A stretch of DNA of 64,000 nt, from IMG/VR virus record IMGVR_UViG_3300042560_001323, positions 62,001-126,000 of that record; one strand, written 5' to 3'. A model generated the notes under the pieces. The model ran no database searches. It had not been told where the DNA came from and was given only the letters and a program-made list of their open reading frames with translations. Positions 5,928 to 53,825 of the stretch are shown one piece after another (the stretch's first letter is position 1; each line of letters starts with the position of its first letter). A program made the translations under genes and the position numbers.

Positions 5928-8225
5928 TTATTTTCCGGGGCAATCTACGACGTTAATGACCTTTTCACGGTTCACTGGCACAATAGTTAGGTTATCACCA
6001 ACTCTCTCTACACAGAGCCGTGCAATAAGATTTACCCTATAGCCAGTTTGAGACTGAATATAGATTTTTGGCATTTCTGTAAATCCTTCACCTTTTGTAA
6101 GAACATCAATTTTTATGATGGCTCCATTAGGACTTATTGTTGCTCTTGCGGTTGCTCCATTTGGAGGCTCAATAATAACTTGATCGCTTTGCGAGTAGCC
6201 AAATCCACTTTCTCTAATAATAACGTCACAGAGTTTTAGAATGACTGGGTATTGGCCATTTGATTTGGATGGATAGATTGCAGTTGGGGGTTTAACTGGA
6301 TCAGTCAAGGTTCTACCATCTCCACCTAAACTTCCATCTGGTGCAGAAAGATAACCGGAGCCCATATCTGTTATAACTACTTTAGTTACTCCAGTTGTAG
6401 TTGTTCCATTTGTTCCGGTTGCATTTGTTCCGGTTGTAGTTGTTCCATTTGTTCCGGTTGTAGTAGTGGAGGTGGTTCCAGAAATTTGAGCATTGACCAC
6501 ACCAATAATAGCAGTAGCAACCGCACCAGAACCTTTACCGCAAGCATCATAAAACTTTATTAGAGGAGAAGATGTATAACCCCCACCTGGATTTGTTATG
6601 TCAATTCCGATAACCTGACCCAATGCACTAACAATTGCATTACCGGCTGCACCGGTTCCACCTCCACCAGAGAATTGAATAGTTGGGGGACCACAAGAAA
6701 TAGCACCCACATTACAGGTATCTTGAAATGCATCACTAAAATCTAAATCAAAGTTAAAATTATCGGGGTCAACAGACTGTTGGACATTTGTAGCAAATGA
6801 CTTCATTTTACTAATCAATCCCGAAATATCCGTGATATCTCCCGCAATAGATTCTGGTCCGTCCCATATACTCCATTCTTTTATCTTTGCACAGGATGGT
6901 TCTTCATCACAAGAAATACCCGAAAGAAGATCGCTAACAAACCCGAGAATATCTGAAACAACATCAAATATACCGAAAACTGCCTTCAACGGAGCAAGAA
7001 TTAAATCAATTGCACCGGTAAGGAGACCTGTAATTTTACCAATAAGAGCCCCGACAAAGTTTTCAACCGCGCACAGTGGAGTATTGATAAGATAATCCAC
7101 TGCGGATGCAAGAAACTTTGCAACCATTTTAATAAGATTTTTGATTATCTTCCTGAACAAACAGGCCAATAAATCATTTGCTTTTTCAACCTTATCTATT
7201 GCCTTCTGGAGTTCACTTGGAAATAGAGTATAATATACATTCTTAAGTTTATCGTTAATTTGATTAATTATAAACTGTTGTATTTGTGTGATTAGGGTTT
7301 TCAGAGGAACAGAAATAAATTTTGAGACCTCTTGAATTTTTACCTTAAGATATTCATCAATGCTATATTGTTTTCCTTCTTTATTTTGATATGTATCAAT
7401 TGAATTAGTAAATCCAGATGAGAATACTTCATTTAAAGTTGTGCTAACCCCGATAGGAGAGTTAAAAGAGCCAAGTGCATTAAAAGGAATAAATGCTGCT
7501 GAATATGCTCCACTCGCAATGGTGCTAATACCAGATGAATTAATATTGAAATTTTGAAGAGTCGTTGATCCTATTTCAATAGAAGGGCTCTGACCAATAC
7601 TGGCAAGACTATTTTTTTGATTGGCAAACCACAATTTTGCATCAGTTATTTCTCTGATGAACTTCTTTAAACTGCTCTGAATTGCCCCGAGTGGCACTTT
7701 TTCACAGGTTGTTGGCGCCTCAAGAAATGTCGTAAAAACTCCATCTTGAAGTTCAAAATAGTTGGCAACATTTTCGTAGAACATTGCATTAGCCGAAGAC
7801 TCAATGAATCCTTTCTTTGGCGAAATATTATAAACTGGTGGTTGTTCTTTGCCGTTAAAGGCACTAAATGGAGTAAACCCTACGGCAGACGTTCCAAATA
7901 ATGTTTGTTCATTAGTGCCAAGACAGCCAGTAATAAAGTATCTTTCTCCAATTTGTGAGACCCAGACGAATGAACCCTCGGTCAAATTTGCAGTTTGATA
8001 ATTAGCCCTATGGCCAGTTCCTGCGGTTACAGGATACATTACTTCCAACCAAGGAAGATTTATATCAGGAAGAATTGACTTATTTTCAGAATGAATACCT
8101 TGGATTCTTACGGGATACCTTTTACCCCATCCTTTATTTGCTCCAGGTTTCCATTTTCCAGATGCGGAATTGCTTTTCCAAAAATCAGGTGGTATTTGGC
8201 CAATAAAGAAGTTATTATTTCCCAT
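5928..8225 (-). CDS. Baseplate hub subunit gp5-like
   Basis: N-terminal OB-fold signature RYPVRIQGIH...LPWLEVMYPVTAG; Gly-rich GxGY repeats; Thr/Gly low-complexity tract near 6380-6480. Confidence 0.85.
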   Translation of the reverse strand: MGNNNFFIGQIPPDFWKSNSASGKWKPGANKGWGKRYPVRIQGIHSENKSILPDINLPWLEVMYPVTAGTGHRANYQTANLTEGSFVWVSQIGERYFITGCLGTNEQTLFGTSAVGFTPFSAFNGKEQPPVYNISPKKGFIESSANAMFYENVANYFELQDGVFTTFLEAPTTCEKVPLGAIQSSLKKFIREITDAKLWFANQKNSLASIGQSPSIEIGSTTLQNFNINSSGISTIASGAYSAAFIPFNALGSFNSPIGVSTTLNEVFSSGFTNSIDTYQNKEGKQYSIDEYLKVKIQEVSKFISVPLKTLITQIQQFIINQINDKLKNVYYTLFPSELQKAIDKVEKANDLLACLFRKIIKNLIKMVAKFLASAVDYLINTPLCAVENFVGALIGKITGLLTGAIDLILAPLKAVFGIFDVVSDILGFVSDLLSGISCDEEPSCAKIKEWSIWDGPESIAGDITDISGLISKMKSFATNVQQSVDPDNFNFDLDFSDAFQDTCNVGAISCGPPTIQFSGGGGTGAAGNAIVSALGQVIGIDITNPGGGYTSSPLIKFYDACGKGSGAVATAIIGVVNAQISGTTSTTTTGTNGTTTTGTNATGTNGTTTTGVTKVVITDMGSGYLSAPDGSLGGDGRTLTDPVKPPTAIYPSKSNGQYPVILKLCDVIIRESGFGYSQSDQVIIEPPNGATARATISPNGAIIKIDVLTKGEGFTEMPKIYIQSQTGYRVNLIARLCVERVGDNLTIVPVNREKVINVVDCPGK

Positions 8226-9539: not shown

Positions 9540-12299
9540 TTATGTTAATATTGGTTGAATAAGAATTTGAGTTTCTTTTTCAATATTTGTTGTTATCCTG
9601 CTTGCAATATTACTTATCTGTTGTAATCTTTGTTGTTGTGGGGAGGATGCTATGGCCAGAGGTTTAGCCCCAGAAAGATTCATTTGTTCAGACGTTTGAT
9701 TGGAAGAAATTAAAGGGCCAGAATCTCTTCTAAATCGTGCCCTACTGGCAGGAGTTTTAAATCTAACGTGAATGTGATTTGGATGTTTAAAATTACCCGG
9801 CGCCGAATGCATCGGCATACCTTCAAACCACTGTCCAACTGGGTCGAATATAAGTTCATCAATTCCCAATTGTTTCCGCCTAGAAAACAACGATTTATAT
9901 AGAACCTTTAATCTTTCAATCCCCTCACTTTCTTCCCCACGAAAATCGGTAATATCCAATGAATGTTCAGCGTGGTCTGCACTATTTGAATGTGATCCAA
10001 CATAAGAAGACCCTAAAGGATTGAATCCCTTAAATTTAGTGAAGAATCTGTTTTCAGCAACAGTAAATCCCATTTTTAATAAGGACTTACCAACTGTTAT
10101 TGGGTCTGAACCACCAAGATGAAATCCTTTAATCTCTTTTCCAATATTTCCACCTTTGGCTTTTTGTATCGCGGACTGAAGTTTTGTTTTACTGACAAAG
10201 CTCAATCCTCTCCATTCATTAATAAAATTCTCAACAGTTGCTCCAGTTGAAAGCCTATATTTTATCAAGGCTATTGCTAGTTTATCTTGATTTGCTGGTG
10301 AAAATTTATCGGTTGTTCTTACGCCAGTATCTCCATAGCTCCCAGACATAAGCCCGCGCATTGTCTTTCCTATAATTTGATATCTTCCCGCAGCGTGTAT
10401 TGGGGGATTTTTATTCGCCTGATGTTGCATTATTTCTGCAATGGTCATATCAGTAAGATTTTTTCGTATTGGACCAGAAGATGACGGGCCACTATAACCA
10501 ACAGTTTGGTAGCCGCTATCTGTACCACCTTCATTATACGCATTATACCCCCCAGATGTAGCACTCTCTTTTTGAGCAATAATATTCAATAAATCGGTGT
10601 AATCTCCATCGAAATAACTCCCATCGCTAGGCATATCCCCAGAATCCCCGGAAGATTTAATTTCGGGTCTGTGCAACTCTAATTCTTTGCGTATATTCTG
10701 AAAAATTTCAGAACTTCTATTGTCCAACATTGCAGTAAATGACCGAACAATTTCCTTTGCAACAACCTGGCCCGGTGATGCCCCAGATTGACTAATCGTT
10801 CTACTAGCGGGAACAATACCACCACCAGCCATCGCAAACATAGATGAGCCGAGCATCTTTGCATTTGTTGCGGTTTGGTCATCAATAGAAGAGTCAATAA
10901 CAAAGGCAAGATACTTTTCGAGGCCCATTAAAGTTGACCGTTCAATCTTCTGGCCGAGTGCCAACATCTCAACACCAGAACTAAGAAAATTACCAAAAAC
11001 ACCAGCCTTTTTCATAACCCCAGCGTTTTTCTTCAAGAGCCTCAGCGGACTCATCGTATTATCATTATCGCTGTCGGGGAATAACTTCTTGATGTTATCT
11101 TCACCGCCAACATTTTTACCGGGAAGTGTGCGCTGACGTAACTGTTTAGGAGGTCTTTTTGGTTTGGCTTTTTTTATTGTTCTAGGAACTCTTGTATAAG
11201 ATTTTGAACCAACTCTACCACCAGTTGCGTGTTTTTGGGGTTTACCAAATCCAGACAGTGTATCATAAAGAGCACCGCCAACAATGTCACCAATAATACC
11301 ACCTAAAATCGTGCCAACTCCTGGAACTGGAATAAAACTGCCTAATCCTGCACCAATAGTTGCACCAATAGCCTTTGCGGCGGCCTTACCCGGTTTTTCA
11401 CCCATCATCATAGAAATGGCAAAATTAATCAGGCCACCAACGATTGGAACTCTACCAAATATTCTTCCAAACTTACCAATAAACTTTCCGCCAGTTTTTG
11501 CTGCGGCTCTTTTTACTCCACCTTTAGCTGTCGCTTCTCCGACATTAATATATCCACGCCTTGCAAGTCTTGCCCTATCTCCAATATTTGCTTCTCCAGC
11601 AATAAAACGGGCATAAGATTCATTAACCCTACTTAAAGAGCCGGGTTTTAATATGGGGACTTTACTGCCTTTTGGTGCCTTTGGCATAGGAATGCCGCCA
11701 CTTCCTGCAACAGCAAGACCTAATACAACTGCAAGATTTAAAAAGGTATTAAGATTTTTCTCTAAATCTTCAAATGACTTTTCAAACTTATCTCCAGTAG
11801 TTTTCTTTAAAATTCCTTTTATTTTATCGTGAACCTTATACCCAAAATCTACTGCACTAACAATGCCACCTAAAACATTGCCGACAAAGTTCTCAAAAAC
11901 TTTATAAAAAGGAGTAATGAACTTTACAATGCCTAGTATTTTTGGAAGATTTTTTAGAGCAAAAGGAACTGCCATTCCCATTGCGGTGTATAAAATAAAA
12001 TTGCGGATTGCATCTAGAAATCCGGTTCTAGGAAGTTTCTCCTTAATGAAGTTAATTGGATTAACTTTTCTTTGTTTCTCAATACTAAGTTTTTTATCTC
12101 TTCTCTTTGAATCTGTGTCTTTTTTTCTTTGGTCCTCTAATTGTTTTCTCTTTCCCTTTATCCCCAATACAACATATGCATCAATTTTACGCATATTGTT
12201 GTTAATACCCTTGAGTTCTAGAACAACAGGGTCATTTCTACACTCTGGATTAAGTGTGATACTTTTTGGAATAAAGGAAGAACGAGAAAATGATACCAT
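9540..12299 (-). CDS. Large tail-associated protein (gp29/tape-measure-like) with lysozyme-like and possible peptidase domains
   Basis: LLNIIAQKES..GGYNAYN...AAGRYQI lysozyme-like fold; C-terminal H..H.LD and HPNHIHV. Confidence 0.7.
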   Translation of the reverse strand: MVSFSRSSFIPKSITLNPECRNDPVVLELKGINNNMRKIDAYVVLGIKGKRKQLEDQRKKDTDSKRRDKKLSIEKQRKVNPINFIKEKLPRTGFLDAIRNFILYTAMGMAVPFALKNLPKILGIVKFITPFYKVFENFVGNVLGGIVSAVDFGYKVHDKIKGILKKTTGDKFEKSFEDLEKNLNTFLNLAVVLGLAVAGSGGIPMPKAPKGSKVPILKPGSLSRVNESYARFIAGEANIGDRARLARRGYINVGEATAKGGVKRAAAKTGGKFIGKFGRIFGRVPIVGGLINFAISMMMGEKPGKAAAKAIGATIGAGLGSFIPVPGVGTILGGIIGDIVGGALYDTLSGFGKPQKHATGGRVGSKSYTRVPRTIKKAKPKRPPKQLRQRTLPGKNVGGEDNIKKLFPDSDNDNTMSPLRLLKKNAGVMKKAGVFGNFLSSGVEMLALGQKIERSTLMGLEKYLAFVIDSSIDDQTATNAKMLGSSMFAMAGGGIVPASRTISQSGASPGQVVAKEIVRSFTAMLDNRSSEIFQNIRKELELHRPEIKSSGDSGDMPSDGSYFDGDYTDLLNIIAQKESATSGGYNAYNEGGTDSGYQTVGYSGPSSSGPIRKNLTDMTIAEIMQHQANKNPPIHAAGRYQIIGKTMRGLMSGSYGDTGVRTTDKFSPANQDKLAIALIKYRLSTGATVENFINEWRGLSFVSKTKLQSAIQKAKGGNIGKEIKGFHLGGSDPITVGKSLLKMGFTVAENRFFTKFKGFNPLGSSYVGSHSNSADHAEHSLDITDFRGEESEGIERLKVLYKSLFSRRKQLGIDELIFDPVGQWFEGMPMHSAPGNFKHPNHIHVRFKTPASRARFRRDSGPLISSNQTSEQMNLSGAKPLAIASSPQQQRLQQISNIASRITTNIEKETQILIQPILT

Positions 12300-14494
12300 T
12301 AGGACATATTACCTGCTCTAATTCCAAGTGTTGCAAGAGTTCCATTATCTCCATATCTATCTGAATAAGGTGGAATTGCAGAGAAGTCTGGAACATCTGT
12401 TGATGCACTTTCTCCACCTTTAGGGTCTTGATTTTTGAGGCTAATCGGGGGTAACTCTGTTATGGTTACTTTACCAGCGGTTCTAGGACCGGGAGCTATG
12501 ACTGTTGGTGCCATAGCGGTAAGTTGAAGATTATTTTTTGGTAAAAAAGACTGCTCATTTCCAGGTTGAAGATTGTTTCTTGGTATAAATGACTGCTCAT
12601 TTCCGGGTTGAGAATATAGCATTGAAGGAATTGGAGCAGCAACATTTCCCCGCTCTTTATGGTATTTTGTATTCTCTGCTGGGTAATTTGTGAAGAAATT
12701 ATCCTTTCTCGGAACTTTATTGCCGTTAACCATATCATAACGAATGGCATCATCTCCTTTCATATGCTTGAGTTGAGATGTTCCAAAGAATGAAGGTCTT
12801 CCTCCAACGTGCTGTTGAGCATTTATTTGGAGTTGACTATTTCTCAATGCTCTTTCGGTTTCGTTCAACATTTGCATCGCTGAATTAATATCAACATTTT
12901 TAGCCTTGGCTAGAGCAAGAGCAGCAGATTTTCTATCATTAATATTTAACCAATCGCTTCTATTTTTAAATGTTGGCTCGTATTGACCCTCTCCAGTTAT
13001 AATATCTTTTATGGTATTCCTTCTGGCAGTTGGCATAAAGTTTACGCCATATGCCGATGAGCCAGCATATAGGCGATTGTAAATGGATTGAGCAACATCT
13101 GCTCGTCCTTGTGGGTCTGAATCTTCAGCAGATGCAATAGCAAGTAGGGAATTATAATCTGCTTGACTTATTTTAGGCGAATTTTTTGGAGGAGTGAATG
13201 AATTTATTGCCTTGGCTGGTCTACCAAACTGTGGCATACTTTTCATCATATTTGAGCCAACAGATTTAATGCCGCTCATAATTCCACCGACAATACCACC
13301 ATCTTTAGCGAATTGGATATTGTTTGCAAATTTTGGTCGGTTGCTAGAACCAGCCTGTAGATTCATTTTTAAAAATGTATCAGCCCCAAACTTATCAACT
13401 GCAGCCTTTGACATTACAACCTCTCCAGGTTGTGCTGCAATTAGTTGCGTATCTGGCCCAGCTCCAGTAATTGCAATACCACTTGCCTCATCAATATGCC
13501 CACCTTCGGCATAACGAATTTCGTTAACGTGCTTTTCTTCTGGAAGGAAGAAATTGATTCCTCTCACCAAACCACCGCTAGAATAAGCACCAGTAGGTGC
13601 CATCGGAGAAGAAGCGGGGGAAGTTCCACCTTTATTTGGAGTTTTGTTGGGTTCTTGATTACTCCCCTCATCTGCCTTTGTGAGTAACTTGTGGGCAAGA
13701 ATACCCGCACCCGCCAATGCTCCAGCAGCAAGACCTCTAACTCCTATTGATTTTAAACCGAAAAGAATACCGGGAATACCGATTTTTCGTAGATATGTAA
13801 TAGTAGAAATAACTGCTCCGATAGATGCACGGATTGCACCACCAAATTTAGTTCCAAAAAGAACAAATGCACCTAGTAATGCTGGCCACCAATCTTTTAA
13901 GAATCTAGTAAGAGACTTGACTTTCTTCTCGTTTGCTGGATCTGCAAACCATTTTAAAATCTTGCTAATGGCCCGACCGGCTAAAGTGAATAGGATGAAT
14001 TTAAAAATTGCATCCATTGCACCTTTAATCGGATTGAATGCCTGTTGAAATGTTCTTGATAGCTTTCTACCGGAAGACTCTAATAGATTCTCTTTTTCTT
14101 TTCGTTCTTGATCCTCTTGGTTTTTTCTTATCTCATCTGTCTTTTTTTTATCTAAAAGGCTTTCAACTTTGAGGACATTTAAAACCCTAGAAACAGATTC
14201 ATTAATTATGTTGAGCATCCCCAACATATCATCGCAACAGTTACAATAATTGTTAGATTTATTATTTCCCAATGATAGGCCGGTTTTGGTTATTCTTCTT
14301 GGCGTTTTACTTCTTCTTGGCGTTCTCTGTCTTTGAGGAGGTTGTGGTTCTTGTTGTTGGGCTTCCGCTTTTTCTTCCTGTTTAATTTGAAATAAAAGTT
14401 CTTCAATCTTATCGCCCGCAGACTCTCCTCCAACAATTTCCGGTTTAGGAAGAGGCTTTTTATTTGGGTTTTTATTAGAGCGCCTGGGTGCCAT
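12299..14494 (-). CDS. Large tail-associated protein with SleB-like cell wall hydrolase domain
   Basis: AEDSDPQGRADVAQSIYNR...IITGEGQYEP; coiled-coil N-terminus. Confidence 0.7.
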   Translation of the reverse strand: MAPRRSNKNPNKKPLPKPEIVGGESAGDKIEELLFQIKQEEKAEAQQQEPQPPQRQRTPRRSKTPRRITKTGLSLGNNKSNNYCNCCDDMLGMLNIINESVSRVLNVLKVESLLDKKKTDEIRKNQEDQERKEKENLLESSGRKLSRTFQQAFNPIKGAMDAIFKFILFTLAGRAISKILKWFADPANEKKVKSLTRFLKDWWPALLGAFVLFGTKFGGAIRASIGAVISTITYLRKIGIPGILFGLKSIGVRGLAAGALAGAGILAHKLLTKADEGSNQEPNKTPNKGGTSPASSPMAPTGAYSSGGLVRGINFFLPEEKHVNEIRYAEGGHIDEASGIAITGAGPDTQLIAAQPGEVVMSKAAVDKFGADTFLKMNLQAGSSNRPKFANNIQFAKDGGIVGGIMSGIKSVGSNMMKSMPQFGRPAKAINSFTPPKNSPKISQADYNSLLAIASAEDSDPQGRADVAQSIYNRLYAGSSAYGVNFMPTARRNTIKDIITGEGQYEPTFKNRSDWLNINDRKSAALALAKAKNVDINSAMQMLNETERALRNSQLQINAQQHVGGRPSFFGTSQLKHMKGDDAIRYDMVNGNKVPRKDNFFTNYPAENTKYHKERGNVAAPIPSMLYSQPGNEQSFIPRNNLQPGNEQSFLPKNNLQLTAMAPTVIAPGPRTAGKVTITELPPISLKNQDPKGGESASTDVPDFSAIPPYSDRYGDNGTLATLGIRAGNMS

Positions 14495-19652: not shown

Positions 19653-20180
19653 TTAGGGGGTGCTAATAAATGTAATCTTTGGTCTTAGCGGTGGTTCTTC
19701 CTCAGTTTCTTCCTTAGTGAAGTCAAACAGAGGAACGAACAATAAAGTCTTACCATCGTCCAAAAGCGTGTGCATACTCATTAATTCCCAAGTGGCATCC
19801 CTGGCGGCATACCAGGCGGCATACCAGGCGGCATCCCTGGCGGAATACCCGGCGGCATCCCCAGCGGCATACCAGGCGGCAGACCCGGCGGCATCCCTGG
19901 CGGCAGACCTGGCGGCAGACCCGGCGGCATCCCTGGCGGCAGACCCGGCGGCATTCCTGGCGGCAGAGTCTAGGGCACGGTAGCGGCGGGCAACTTCATT
20001 CCATTGGTCGGCAGTAAGACCATCCATGAACCACCAGAAGTTAAGGACGGTTTCGTAGTTTGGTCCTAGAAAGTCTTGTGGACTTGTAAGAGCTTCAGGG
20101 TTTTGAAGTTCGTTGAAGAAGTTTTGATGGGCTTTTGAGTAATACATAAACTCCGTTGGATTTCTAAGAGAATAACCCAT
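19653..20180 (-). CDS. Ala-Ala-X-X repeat protein family, copy A
   Basis: [36 protein letters not shown]-domain, 14 tandem 12-bp units, ELMSMHTLL...LLFVPLF end. Confidence 0.8.
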
Positions 20181-47137: not shown

Positions 47138-47592
47138 AAGTCGTTAAAAAAAGGAACGAACAATAAAGTCTTACCATCGTCCAAAAGCGTGTGCATACCA
47201 ATTAGTTCATAGGTGGCATTCCTGGCGGCATACCCGGCGGCAAAATAGGCGGCAGACCCGGCGGCATCCCTGGCGGCAGACCAGGCGGCATCCCCGGCGG
47301 CATACCCGGCGGCAAAATAGGCGGCAGACCCGGCGGCATCCCTGGCGGCAGACCAGGCGGCATCCCCGGCGGCATACCCGGCGGCATACCTGGCGGCATC
47401 CCAGGCGGCATCGTCTAGGGCATCATAACGGCGGGCAACTTCATACCATTGGTTCTCGGTAAGACCGTCCATAAACCACCAGAAGTTAAGGACGGTTTCG
47501 TAGTTTGGTCCTAGAAAATTCTGTGGATTTTTTAGGGCTTCAGGGTTTTGAAGGCGGTTGGAGAAGTTTTGGTGGGCTTTTGAGTAATTCAT
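47134..47592 (-). CDS. Ala-Ala-X-X repeat protein family, copy B
   Basis: Same N- and C-domains as copy A; 16 tandem 12-bp units including a 6-unit higher-order duplication. Confidence 0.8.
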
Positions 47593-48255: not shown

Positions 48256-48366
48256 ATGTGGCTTGTGTTAATCATTAGTAAAGGACTGGTGAGATTTTTC
48301 TCGGTTTTATTATAGGGTATAATGCCCGGTTTGTCGAGCAACAGTGGACGGTTGTGATGGTGTCCA

Positions 48367-48437
48367 TAGGAACATCGGGGATTGAACCCAAATCAACCGG
48401 TTATAGGCCGGTCGCTCTTCCATTGAGCTATGCTCCC
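48367..48437 (-). tRNA. trnI: tRNA-Ile, anticodon UAU
   Basis: Cloverleaf GGGAGCA/TGTTCCT; anticodon arm ACCGG-CCTATAA-CCGGT; T loop TTCAATC; no encoded CCA. Confidence 0.85.
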
Positions 48438-48592
48438 ATCAAAATCAACAACCGTCGTTATGCTCTCCAAGATAGTTAAAATCGGCACTATCTTCTTTTT
48501 TCTGATGGTCAGTATACATCTGAAAACTTAATAATATTCCCCTTAAATGGGAACAATCATCCATTTCATTTCAATGTTTTCAGTCATTTTTA

Positions 48593-49212: not shown

Positions 49213-49631
49213 AAGTCGTTAAAAAGAGGAACGAACAACAAAGTCTTACCAGCATTCAATAAAGTGTGCATACCAATTAGTTCATAAGTTGCATACCCGG
49301 CGGCATACCCGGCGGCATACCCGGCGGCATCCCAGGCGGCATACGCGGCGGCATCCCAGGCGGCATCCCAGGCGGCATTCCTGGCGGCATCCCAGGCGGC
49401 ATCCCTGGCGGCATTCCTGGCGGCATACCTGGCGGCATACCAGGCGGCAGAGTCTAGGGCACGGTAGCGGCGGGCAACTTCATTCCATTGGTCGGCAGTA
49501 AGACCATCCATAAACCACCAGAAGTTAAGGACGGTTTCGTAGTTTGGTCCTAGAAAGTTTTGTGGACTTGTAAGAGCTTCAGGGTTTTGAAGTTCGTTGG
49601 AGAAGTTTTGGTGTGTTTTGGAAATTGGCAT
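49209..49631 (-). CDS. Ala-Ala-X-X repeat protein family, copy C
   Basis: Near-identical flanks to copies A and B; 13 tandem 12-bp units. Confidence 0.8.
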
Positions 49632-53682: not shown

Positions 53683-53749
53683 TATTTATTATTAAGACTT
53701 TCATCACAAAACAGGCAAAACTATGTGAAAGAATTTGGCTAAAAGCCAA

Positions 53750-53822
53750 CGGCCAATAGGAGATTTGAACTCCTGTAACCTACTAGACATGTAGGTGTCC
53801 TAGACCACTAGACGAATTGGCC
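53750..53822 (-). tRNA. trnD: tRNA-Asp, anticodon GUC
   Basis: GGCCAAT/ATTGGCC acceptor; anticodon arm CCTAC-ATGTCTA-GTAGG; T loop TTCAAAT. Confidence 0.88.
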
Positions 53823-53825
53823 ATA

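Follow-up and report, generated by a model that had tools for sequence, protein, structure and literature searches.

Three genes in the DNA analysed here carry tandem arrays of a 12-base unit, and the three bases that vary in these arrays are exactly the adenines of one version of the unit, GCCGCCAGGAAT, which is itself present 26 times. Diversity-generating retroelements (DGRs) mutate template adenines only, and AAT is a classical DGR-type codon. This raises the question whether the arrays are diversified by a reverse-transcriptase mutator or by another process. The first-pass annotation of the locus had named two candidates, adenine-specific retro-mutagenesis of a tandem repeat, or slippage and unit shuffling under diversifying selection. 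As the best explanation, to which we give a probability of roughly 0.6, we propose a tandem-amplified helix segment that is reshaped by slippage and inter-paralog recombination under selection for two diverse exposed residues per unit.

The stretch of 64,000 nucleotides under study (the window) comprises bases 62001-126000 of a virus record of 243,166 bp rated 100% complete. The ends of this record overlap exactly over 467 bp (1-467 and 242700-243166), giving a unique length of about 242.7 kb; the 467-bp 'direct terminal repeat' sits within a long-variant gene of the repeat family, and a three-unit array at genome 7-42 duplicates part of the array at 242622-242741. Matches to T4-type families were obtained in the window for baseplate hub, tail tube cap, wedge, gp32, and ribonucleotide reductase, the family neighbours scanned were T4-like structural and replication genes, and the nearest isolates by gp32 were the Synechococcus phages B3 and B23 (58% identity), which makes picocyanobacteria the likely hosts. 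Judged from these matches, the phage is a T4-like, cyanophage-related myovirus. At genome 227441-227644 on the minus strand, a short psbA-like (Photo_RC) match was seen (profile positions 1-62; 25.8 bits, below the cut-off; two stop codons), which may be the remnant of a photosystem gene or a split one and would suit a cyanophage.

In the window, Tandem Repeats Finder located period-12 arrays at 19794-19965, 47215-47411, and 49291-49449. They lie in frame in ORFs of 140-175 aa with N-terminal and C-terminal parts conserved across the ORFs (Table 1). The unit counts given before (14, 16, and 13) proved exact on recount, and so did the number of units fitting GCCGCC[AGT]GG[AGT][AC]T, 38 of 43 (12 + 14 + 12); elsewhere in the window this degenerate unit occurs 0 times, and 0.02 matches were expected from composition. 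The five off-pattern units are GCCGCT.., TCCGCC.., GCCGCCTATTTT (twice), and GCCGCCGCGTAT. Within the 16-unit array a six-unit block is duplicated (72-nt period, 2.8 copies, 92% identity). The GC-rich frozen codons in an AT-rich genome, also pointed out by the first-pass annotation, are reflected in a GC content of 72-74% in the window arrays versus 38% in the genome. Its three copies are correctly placed, but a fourth, array-less paralog, P0004, had been overlooked. P0004 adjoins P0002 directly downstream, its start overlapping the stop of P0002, and it has kept the N-terminal LGPN..NFW and C-terminal ELIGMH..G..L.F blocks around a non-repetitive middle. Flanks that had been called near-identical are similar rather than identical, since short paralogs differ at 0-24 of 171 nt in the N-flank and at 0-28 of 78 nt in the C-flank.

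Table 1. Positions of arrays, genes, and other features (window coordinates, or genome coordinates where marked).
Feature	Position	Strand	Remarks
Array of the 12-base unit, Ala-Ala-x3-x4	19797-19964	minus	14 units, 12 of 14 fit the degenerate unit
Array of the 12-base unit	47218-47409	minus	16 units, 14 fit the degenerate unit
Array of the 12-base unit	49293-49448	minus	13 units, 12 fit the degenerate unit
Family gene P0001, longest ORF	19653-20180	minus	175 aa; PHROG 8332 match, E 6e-13
Family gene P0002	47134-47592	minus	152 aa; PHROG match
Family gene P0003	49209-49631	minus	140 aa; PHROG match
Array-less paralog P0004	46718-47137	minus	139 aa; family N- and C-terminal blocks
Spurious array ORF	19660-19983	plus	frame open across array
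Spurious array ORF	49289-49501	plus	frame open across array
Spurious array ORF	19781-19954	minus	frame open across array
Spurious array ORF	47202-47411	minus	frame open across array
Spurious array ORF	49277-49438	minus	frame open across array
tRNA-Ile(TAT)	48366-48438	minus	between two family genes
tRNA-Asp(GTC)	53749-53823	minus	
1.35-kb element (approximate length), full copy	genome 22645-24008		398-aa ORF, OrfB_IS605 match (TnpB-like)
1.35-kb element, full copy	genome 30894-32254		398-aa ORF, OrfB_IS605 match (TnpB-like)
1.35-kb element, full copy	genome 190272-191619		398-aa ORF, OrfB_IS605 match (TnpB-like)
1.35-kb element, full copy	genome 220771-222117		398-aa ORF, OrfB_IS605 match (TnpB-like)
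1.35-kb element, partial copy	genome 14197-14980		

For P0001, the family-typical start M-Y-Y-S-K-A-H-Q corresponds to the ATG at 20147, 11 codons inside the ORF, and the protein has a C-terminal extension of about 25 aa that is absent from most copies. In this tail (window 19653-19730) the usual 'NDL' stop is passed and the sequence continues with '..FTKEETEEE..'. Metagenomic relatives such as P0058 carry the same motif followed by a further domain of about 75 aa, and P0001 may be a truncated form of this longer architecture. Since GCNGC is its own reverse complement, Ala-Ala-x-x is read from the antisense strand of an array as well. No frame is interrupted within the arrays, resulting in spurious ORFs such as Pro-Pro-Gly-Met strings and a 107-aa antisense ORF. 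A promoter and terminator scan gave uninformative output.

Extending the search to the whole genome revealed a large uncharacterised family of 27 ORFs, every one on the minus strand and most of them surrounded by small, densely packed genes, which makes up about 5% of the 243-kb phage genome. Arrays of 8-16 units each are present in 15 of the 27 paralogs, with 187 unique units in total (190 listed, three of them the terminal duplicate). An additional domain of about 105 aa is found at the N-terminus of four of these 15 members, and in the array-less members the middle is non-repetitive. The tRNA genes of the entire genome are limited to tRNA-Ile(TAT) and tRNA-Asp(GTC), and none was found for the rare array codons AGG, GGG, and GCC. 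The genome also contains an element of about 1.35 kb in four full copies and one partial copy with 84-91% mutual identity. Only two of these five IS605/TnpB copies lie near family genes. One copy abuts a truncated family gene at genome 23989-24135. In a related phage (L009:10001-11725), an IS605/TnpB element is convergent with a family gene.

The genome-wide set of 190 units defines the pattern of variation. Positions 1-6 read GCCGCC except for a T at position 1 in one unit and at position 6 in six units, while position 8 is G in 184, position 9 is G in 188, and position 12 is T in 189 units. At position 7 we counted A 58, G 75, T 55, and C 2, at position 10 T 93, G 62, A 35, and C 0, and at position 11 A 151, C 34, T 5, and G 0. 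Variation almost only at three sites, as noted for the window copies, thereby holds genome-wide for positions 7, 10, and 11 with the qualification that the other positions are about 97% or more fixed. Seven unit types (GY, RN, RD, WD, GS, WY, and WS) account for 84% of the units. The three variable sites are linked: C at position 11 is confined to units with T at position 10 (32 of 91 versus 0 of 96 units; Fisher 3e-12), and x3 and x4 are associated (chi2 85, p 3e-16), Arg being found with Asn/Asp and Gly with Tyr/Ser. CGG, which is synonymous with AGG, was used in two of the 190 units.

Codon usage separates the arrays from their surroundings. The share of GCC is 98% in arrays and 20% in the genome, the flank count including partial array units and therefore not being separable; that of GGG is 100% in arrays, 10% in the genome, and 0 of 96 in the flanks of the same genes; and that of AGG is 97%, 14%, and 1 of 76, respectively. 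Silent-codon differences amount to 2.7% in arrays, 6% in N-flanks, and 17% in C-flanks, which indicates that the entire gene, beyond the array alone, is being homogenised. The residue alphabet was broadened with 122 array-bearing relatives comprising 1312 units, in which x3 is W in 391, R in 387, and G in 376 units, and x4 is Y in 378, D in 367, S in 321, and N in 107. The order of units showed neither periodicity nor an enrichment of Asp-to-Arg (i, i+3) pairs. With no periodic grammar, a displayed variable surface fits better than a fixed structural pattern; a salt-bridged single helix, which was also considered, is unsupported given the missing Asp-to-Arg enrichment.

How the arrays change can be followed by comparison of paralogs. 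Sharing of four-unit words between their arrays was counted 21 times (1.6 expected; maximum of 8 in 1000 shuffles) and that of five-unit words nine times (0.16 expected). A silent GCT marker is common to four neighbouring units of the array at genome 17679-17846, one of which differs at position 10. Among 11 short paralogs, the distance in the N-flank does not correlate with that in the C-flank (rho 0.17, p 0.22). For example, the copies at genome 10807 and 109134 differ at 0 of 171 nt in their N-flanks and at 16 of 78 nt in their C-flanks, and the C-flank type of the copy at 10807 is common to three other copies. Flanks have thus been reassorted between paralogs, which argues for crossovers in or near the arrays. 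Two paralogs located 12 kb apart (genome 24132-24542 and 36265-36687) have identical 12-unit arrays, each including a rare CGG unit, with flanks differing at 1 of 171 and 0 of 78 nt; the sequences point to a very recent duplication or conversion.

Population behaviour of the arrays was inferred from assemblies, and short-read assemblers can make chimeras in multicopy repeats. Contigs L009 and L010 stem from two different samples; over 17.8 kb their identity is 99.99%, and their arrays are identical. In clusters of at least 90% identity, arrays are mostly identical across samples while flanks differ, and several clusters contain identical arrays from three sources, including one 13-unit array. 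The array differences seen within such clusters comprised the loss of two units, the insertion of a unit along with a substitution, and a single case of a whole unit being replaced. In a related phage with 92-96% identical surroundings, the arrays of syntenic orthologs differ in unit number and order. Taken at the level of assembled contigs, turnover of arrays is much faster than that of flanks, yet not within a genotype. Slippage and unit shuffling under diversifying selection, the second candidate of the first-pass annotation, fits the block duplications, the unit insertions and deletions between relatives, the shared words, and the reassorted flanks. At L009:2072-2179 and L013:1544-1639, the arrays end off-pattern (..AASD RRVV AAAG..) before the C-terminal helix, a stretch which looks like a locally shifted or scrambled unit staying in frame.

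Arrays of the same kind were detected in other viruses. A pattern search with four units of GCNGCNNGGNNT returned Ala-Ala-[Trp/Arg/Gly]-x arrays in at least 118 other viral contigs, in agreement with the earlier remark that AAWD-type repeats are common in phages. In 81 arrays of at least six units from 74 other viral loci, heterozygosity at the two Ala third positions was 0.03 and 0.07 within arrays versus 0.67 and 0.71 between arrays; a single Ala-Ala hexamer is used in 63 of the 81, with 11 hexamers overall. The +1 peptide takes 28 forms in these arrays, and Ala-Ala is always kept. What is conserved is therefore the Ala-Ala frame, each array being frozen on its founder codons. In our reading of these sequences, such within-array freezing is the signature of concerted evolution. 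Heterozygosity at position 8, the second base of the x3 codon, was 0.05 versus 0.64 at position 7. A scan in which codons 3 and 4 were left unconstrained yielded 44 Trp/Arg/Gly-type arrays, in which Arg is encoded by AGG or CGG in 143 of 161 units and Gly by GGG in 79 of 123, and the third base of x4 is mostly C, not T.

The window family belongs to this AA-[W/R/G]-x class: it has tandem 12-nt Ala-Ala-x-x units, x3 is mostly Trp/Arg/Gly encoded as NGG, and silent sites are homogeneous within an array and different between lineages. Distant relatives within the family use GCCGCG or GCCGCA. At x4, Y/D/S/N are found in this lineage versus D/A in most other AAxx lineages. The domains flanking other viral Ala-Ala-x-x arrays are of several unrelated types. 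Of 40 other phage AAxx proteins scanned, a few matched a Pfam model, namely DUF7666, Imm5_like (four proteins), or Imm5 (three). Tandem arrays of other phage and bacterial proteins, some of which Pfam lists as Imm5 (PF14423) or Imm5_like (PF21805) or beside DUF7666 (PF24703), have the same 4-residue unit, x3 alphabet, NGG habit, and silent-site freezing, but their flanking domains differ from those of the window proteins, and no toxin partner is apparent among the family neighbours scanned in this phage. Imm5 is a mostly alpha-helical, predicted immunity protein of polymorphic toxin systems (PMC3482391). Beyond this Imm5 entry, the literature searched for repeat peptides, related Pfam names, and tetrapeptide repeats yielded nothing relevant, and the wider array class appears undescribed in it. 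A C-terminal stretch of 22 columns alone aligns to one other AAxx family (hhalign probability 96.5%). The family studied here is one uncharacterised variant within a recurrent class of phage repeat proteins that appears to have escaped description.

Database searches placed the family among many relatives. For the four window proteins no Pfam family, Imm5 and Imm5_like included, was matched at E<=1, and no NCBIfam match was obtained. PHROG 8332 matched the three array genes with E values of 6.3e-13, 3.4e-11, and 6.4e-11, covering part of the flanks and the array, and P0004 matched none of the PHROG families 8332, 18326, and 3416. Profile matches to these three families were significant, and the families carry no functional annotation. 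Among the 50,697 deposited phage records of INPHARED, no megablast or tblastn match was found for the locus, P0001, P0004, or the N-terminal 62 residues. Searches of the PDB by sequence or profile gave nothing meaningful, neither Foldseek against the PDB nor a shape search of the ESM Atlas gave a match (E>3, TM<0.5), and an ESM Atlas feature search with P0004 returned unnamed clusters only. Sequence, profile, and fold searches thus provided no relative with an established function or structure. In the set of metagenome-derived proteins searched, more than 500 relatives were found at E<=1e-3, and a profile of five array-less paralogs retrieved 345 representatives at E<=1e-3 from 1.84 billion proteins (one per 50%-identity cluster). 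Of the 149 representatives listed among these 345, 142 have no array, and several carry one or two '..RDAAW.AAW..' turns before the C-terminal helix. From this comparison, the array looks like an amplification of a native '..DAAW.AAW..' segment.

With a 100-sequence alignment, AlphaFold2 predicted an all-alpha compact helical bundle (pTM 0.70, mean pLDDT 72.5), in which the array forms three helices of 15-18 residues at low confidence (pLDDT 52-71). This alignment-based model superseded a single-sequence AlphaFold model consisting of one long helix, also of low confidence. On a helical wheel, four units would place eight Ala residues on one broad face and x3 and x4 opposite. Protein-interface hot spots are enriched most strongly in Trp, Arg, and Tyr. 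A binding role is proposed on account of this enrichment, and by analogy the variable surface of the array is probably a binding surface.

Under the explanation proposed at the outset, the middle of the ancestral proteins would have been non-repetitive, with a '..DAAW.AAW..' turn, or two of them, immediately preceding the conserved C-terminal helix. Tandem amplification of this segment within one branch would have produced 8-18 copies of the 12-nt unit coding for Ala-Ala-x3-x4. Units or blocks would be gained and lost via replication slippage or unequal exchange, and the dispersed paralogs would exchange sequence through gene conversion or homologous recombination, crossing over within the arrays. 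Slippage and exchange together would keep the units young and homogenise silent positions, i.e. concerted evolution, and as a result of this homogenisation the units would be frozen on GCC GCC.GG ..T, codons that are rare in the genome. Selection at the protein level would keep two exposed residues per unit diverse. Since Trp has a single codon and the units would be short-lived, the Arg and Gly codons reached at x3 would be limited to AGG and GGG, each one step from that of Trp, and x4 would cycle among AAT, GAT, TAT, and TCT. Taken together, AGG/GGG/TGG at x3 and the cycling at x4 would result in exactly three variable bases, which by chance are the A's of the AGG-AAT unit. Helices of about four units would pack via their Ala faces with Trp/Arg/Gly and Tyr/Asp/Ser/Asn pointing outward, and this variable surface might be used in phage-host or phage-phage conflict. 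Generic diversifying selection leaves the quiet position 8 versus the variable position 7 unexplained, and a specific selection for Trp/Arg/Gly is assumed here. The quiet second base of x3 needs either tight Trp/Arg/Gly selection acting on very young units or a position-biased process.

In DGR mutagenic retrohoming, a reverse transcriptase would copy an invariant template, (GCCGCCAGGAAT)n, err at adenines, and overwrite the arrays. Beside the coincidence of the variable bases with the adenines of one unit, the N/D/Y/S residue alphabet resembles that of DGR variable regions (VRs); as in DGRs, variation is focused on few codon positions, all adenines in one version of the unit and including AAT, and the variable residues are typical of binding sites. 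The components and the behaviour of such a system are missing, however. The lack of a reverse transcriptase, previously stated for the window, extends to the complete 243,166-bp genome, in which RVT_1 gave no match at E<=10 while control genomes gave hits, and 41 of 42 viral records with such arrays are also without one (a reverse transcriptase was found in the remaining record). The all-A template repeat (TR) that the first-pass annotation proposed to look for was sought across the genome: a median of 29% of mismatches fell on the A's of a putative template, 5 of 6 in the best case (2084 ordered array pairs and offsets), so that no array behaves as a template, and a tandem of the all-A unit, (GCCGCCAGGAAT)x2, is absent on both strands. 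Arrays of 8-16 units with unit insertions and deletions between relatives lack the fixed length expected of a VR. DGR sites should vary independently, whereas positions 10 and 11 are linked here and x3 and x4 are associated, and the near-absence of CGG is inexplicable by protein-level selection on random A-to-N changes. Multi-unit blocks shared between paralogs indicate that arrays are not randomised copy by copy, and the identical arrays in independent samples leave no hypervariation between near-identical genomes, as far as assemblies tell. That the variable sites are the adenines of a unit is correct for this phage but particular to it, since position 10 is mostly G, not variable, in related repeat families. 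DGRs also diversify a single C-terminal lectin-type or Ig-type VR, whereas here a tandem all-alpha repeat is found in 15 dispersed genes. We therefore reject the DGR interpretation as highly improbable, the one route left to it being a host-encoded reverse transcriptase with a matching template. Variation confined to the adenines of a repeat is insufficient for a DGR call, and the DGR picture is mimicked when a short coding repeat evolves in concert while selection acts on two of its residues.

A targeted diversifier that works without reverse transcriptase and prefers base 1 of codon 3 and bases 1 and 2 of codon 4 would account for several details; examples are a process driven by a nuclease or polymerase, or patch repair that is coupled to recombination and acts on misaligned heteroduplexes. 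Position 8, although non-synonymous, varies as little as the silent sites, position 7 is almost saturated, and W, R, and G occupy x3 in near-equal thirds across the 1312 units. The unit types share silent states and would thus interconvert faster than silent mutations arise, and misaligned units give heteroduplex mismatches at the three sites only. Against this, the arrays have no candidate enzyme linked to them, selection for Trp/Arg/Gly on young units would give the pattern as well, the arrays are stable between near-identical genomes (assemblies), and the changes between close relatives are whole-unit events. We consider such a diversifier unlikely. It is also rather speculative, though slightly less so, that phages possess an RT-free diversification system for helical Ala-Ala-x-x arrays, in which the recombination machinery of the phage itself would cause misaligned pairing of units and of dispersed paralogs, with mismatches at the three variable bases only, and patch repair would recombine these bases. 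Such a system would renew a 'paratope' repertoire, which this phage would use in 27 genes against proteins of host defence or of rival phages; the minimal 'paratopes' proposed for it are Trp/Arg/blank beside Tyr/Asp/Ser/Asn. An assembly artefact, by which mosaic arrays and reassorted flanks would be short-read chimeras in a multicopy repeat, has a small probability. Many IMG/VR contigs break inside family genes, the 467-bp terminal overlap of the record falls in one, and some of the variants with the same array and different flanks come from contigs of 0.6-2 kb, but arrays are letter-for-letter the same in independent samples and assemblers (e.g. L009, L010, and L011), reading frames are intact in 15 of 15 arrays, and misassembly cannot produce the codon-level pattern. 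Least credible is a constraint by an overlapping +1 frame coding for Pro-Pro-Gly-(Met/Leu), in which positions 7 and 10 are silent. This frame turns the silent sites of the Ala frame into second codon positions and predicts the three variable sites of this lineage perfectly; yet it is closed by stops two codons before and about four codons after the array, and the family's distant relatives have other Ala codons. Dual coding was rejected with the other-phage arrays, which vary at the same positions with 11 Ala hexamers and 28 different +1 peptides across lineages while Ala-Ala is kept.

Compared with known repeat systems, the arrays combine features of several. TAL-effector repeats comprise 33-35 residues with repeat-variable di-residues and form a DNA-binding superhelix. 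Near-identical DNA repeats, two adjacent variable residues per unit, repeat recombination, and multigene families are common to both, but the unit here has four residues and the model is a compact bundle, so that the likeness is one of analogy only, not homology. For DNA binding or a one-unit-one-target code, both TAL-effector traits, no evidence was obtained in this family. The concerted evolution of coding tandem repeats shares with our arrays homogeneous silent sites, divergence between lineages, unit-number polymorphism, and block duplications. In contrast to ordinary coding minisatellites, two residues per unit are near-maximally diverse here and 15 dispersed paralogs are involved.

At the variable core of the family lies a 4-residue unit in which two positions vary among residue types that dominate protein-binding hot spots. 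Should the proteins act as binders in the conflict between phage and host, they would be candidates for new anti-defence functions, and as binders they would also represent a very small natural scaffold for engineered binders. Apart from this family, the window contains two other repeats inside ORFs: a repeat of 15/24-nt period at 6390-6464 in the gp5-like baseplate hub ORF 5928-8225, and a 42-nt-period repeat of 2.1 copies at 12523-12611 in ORF 12299-14494.
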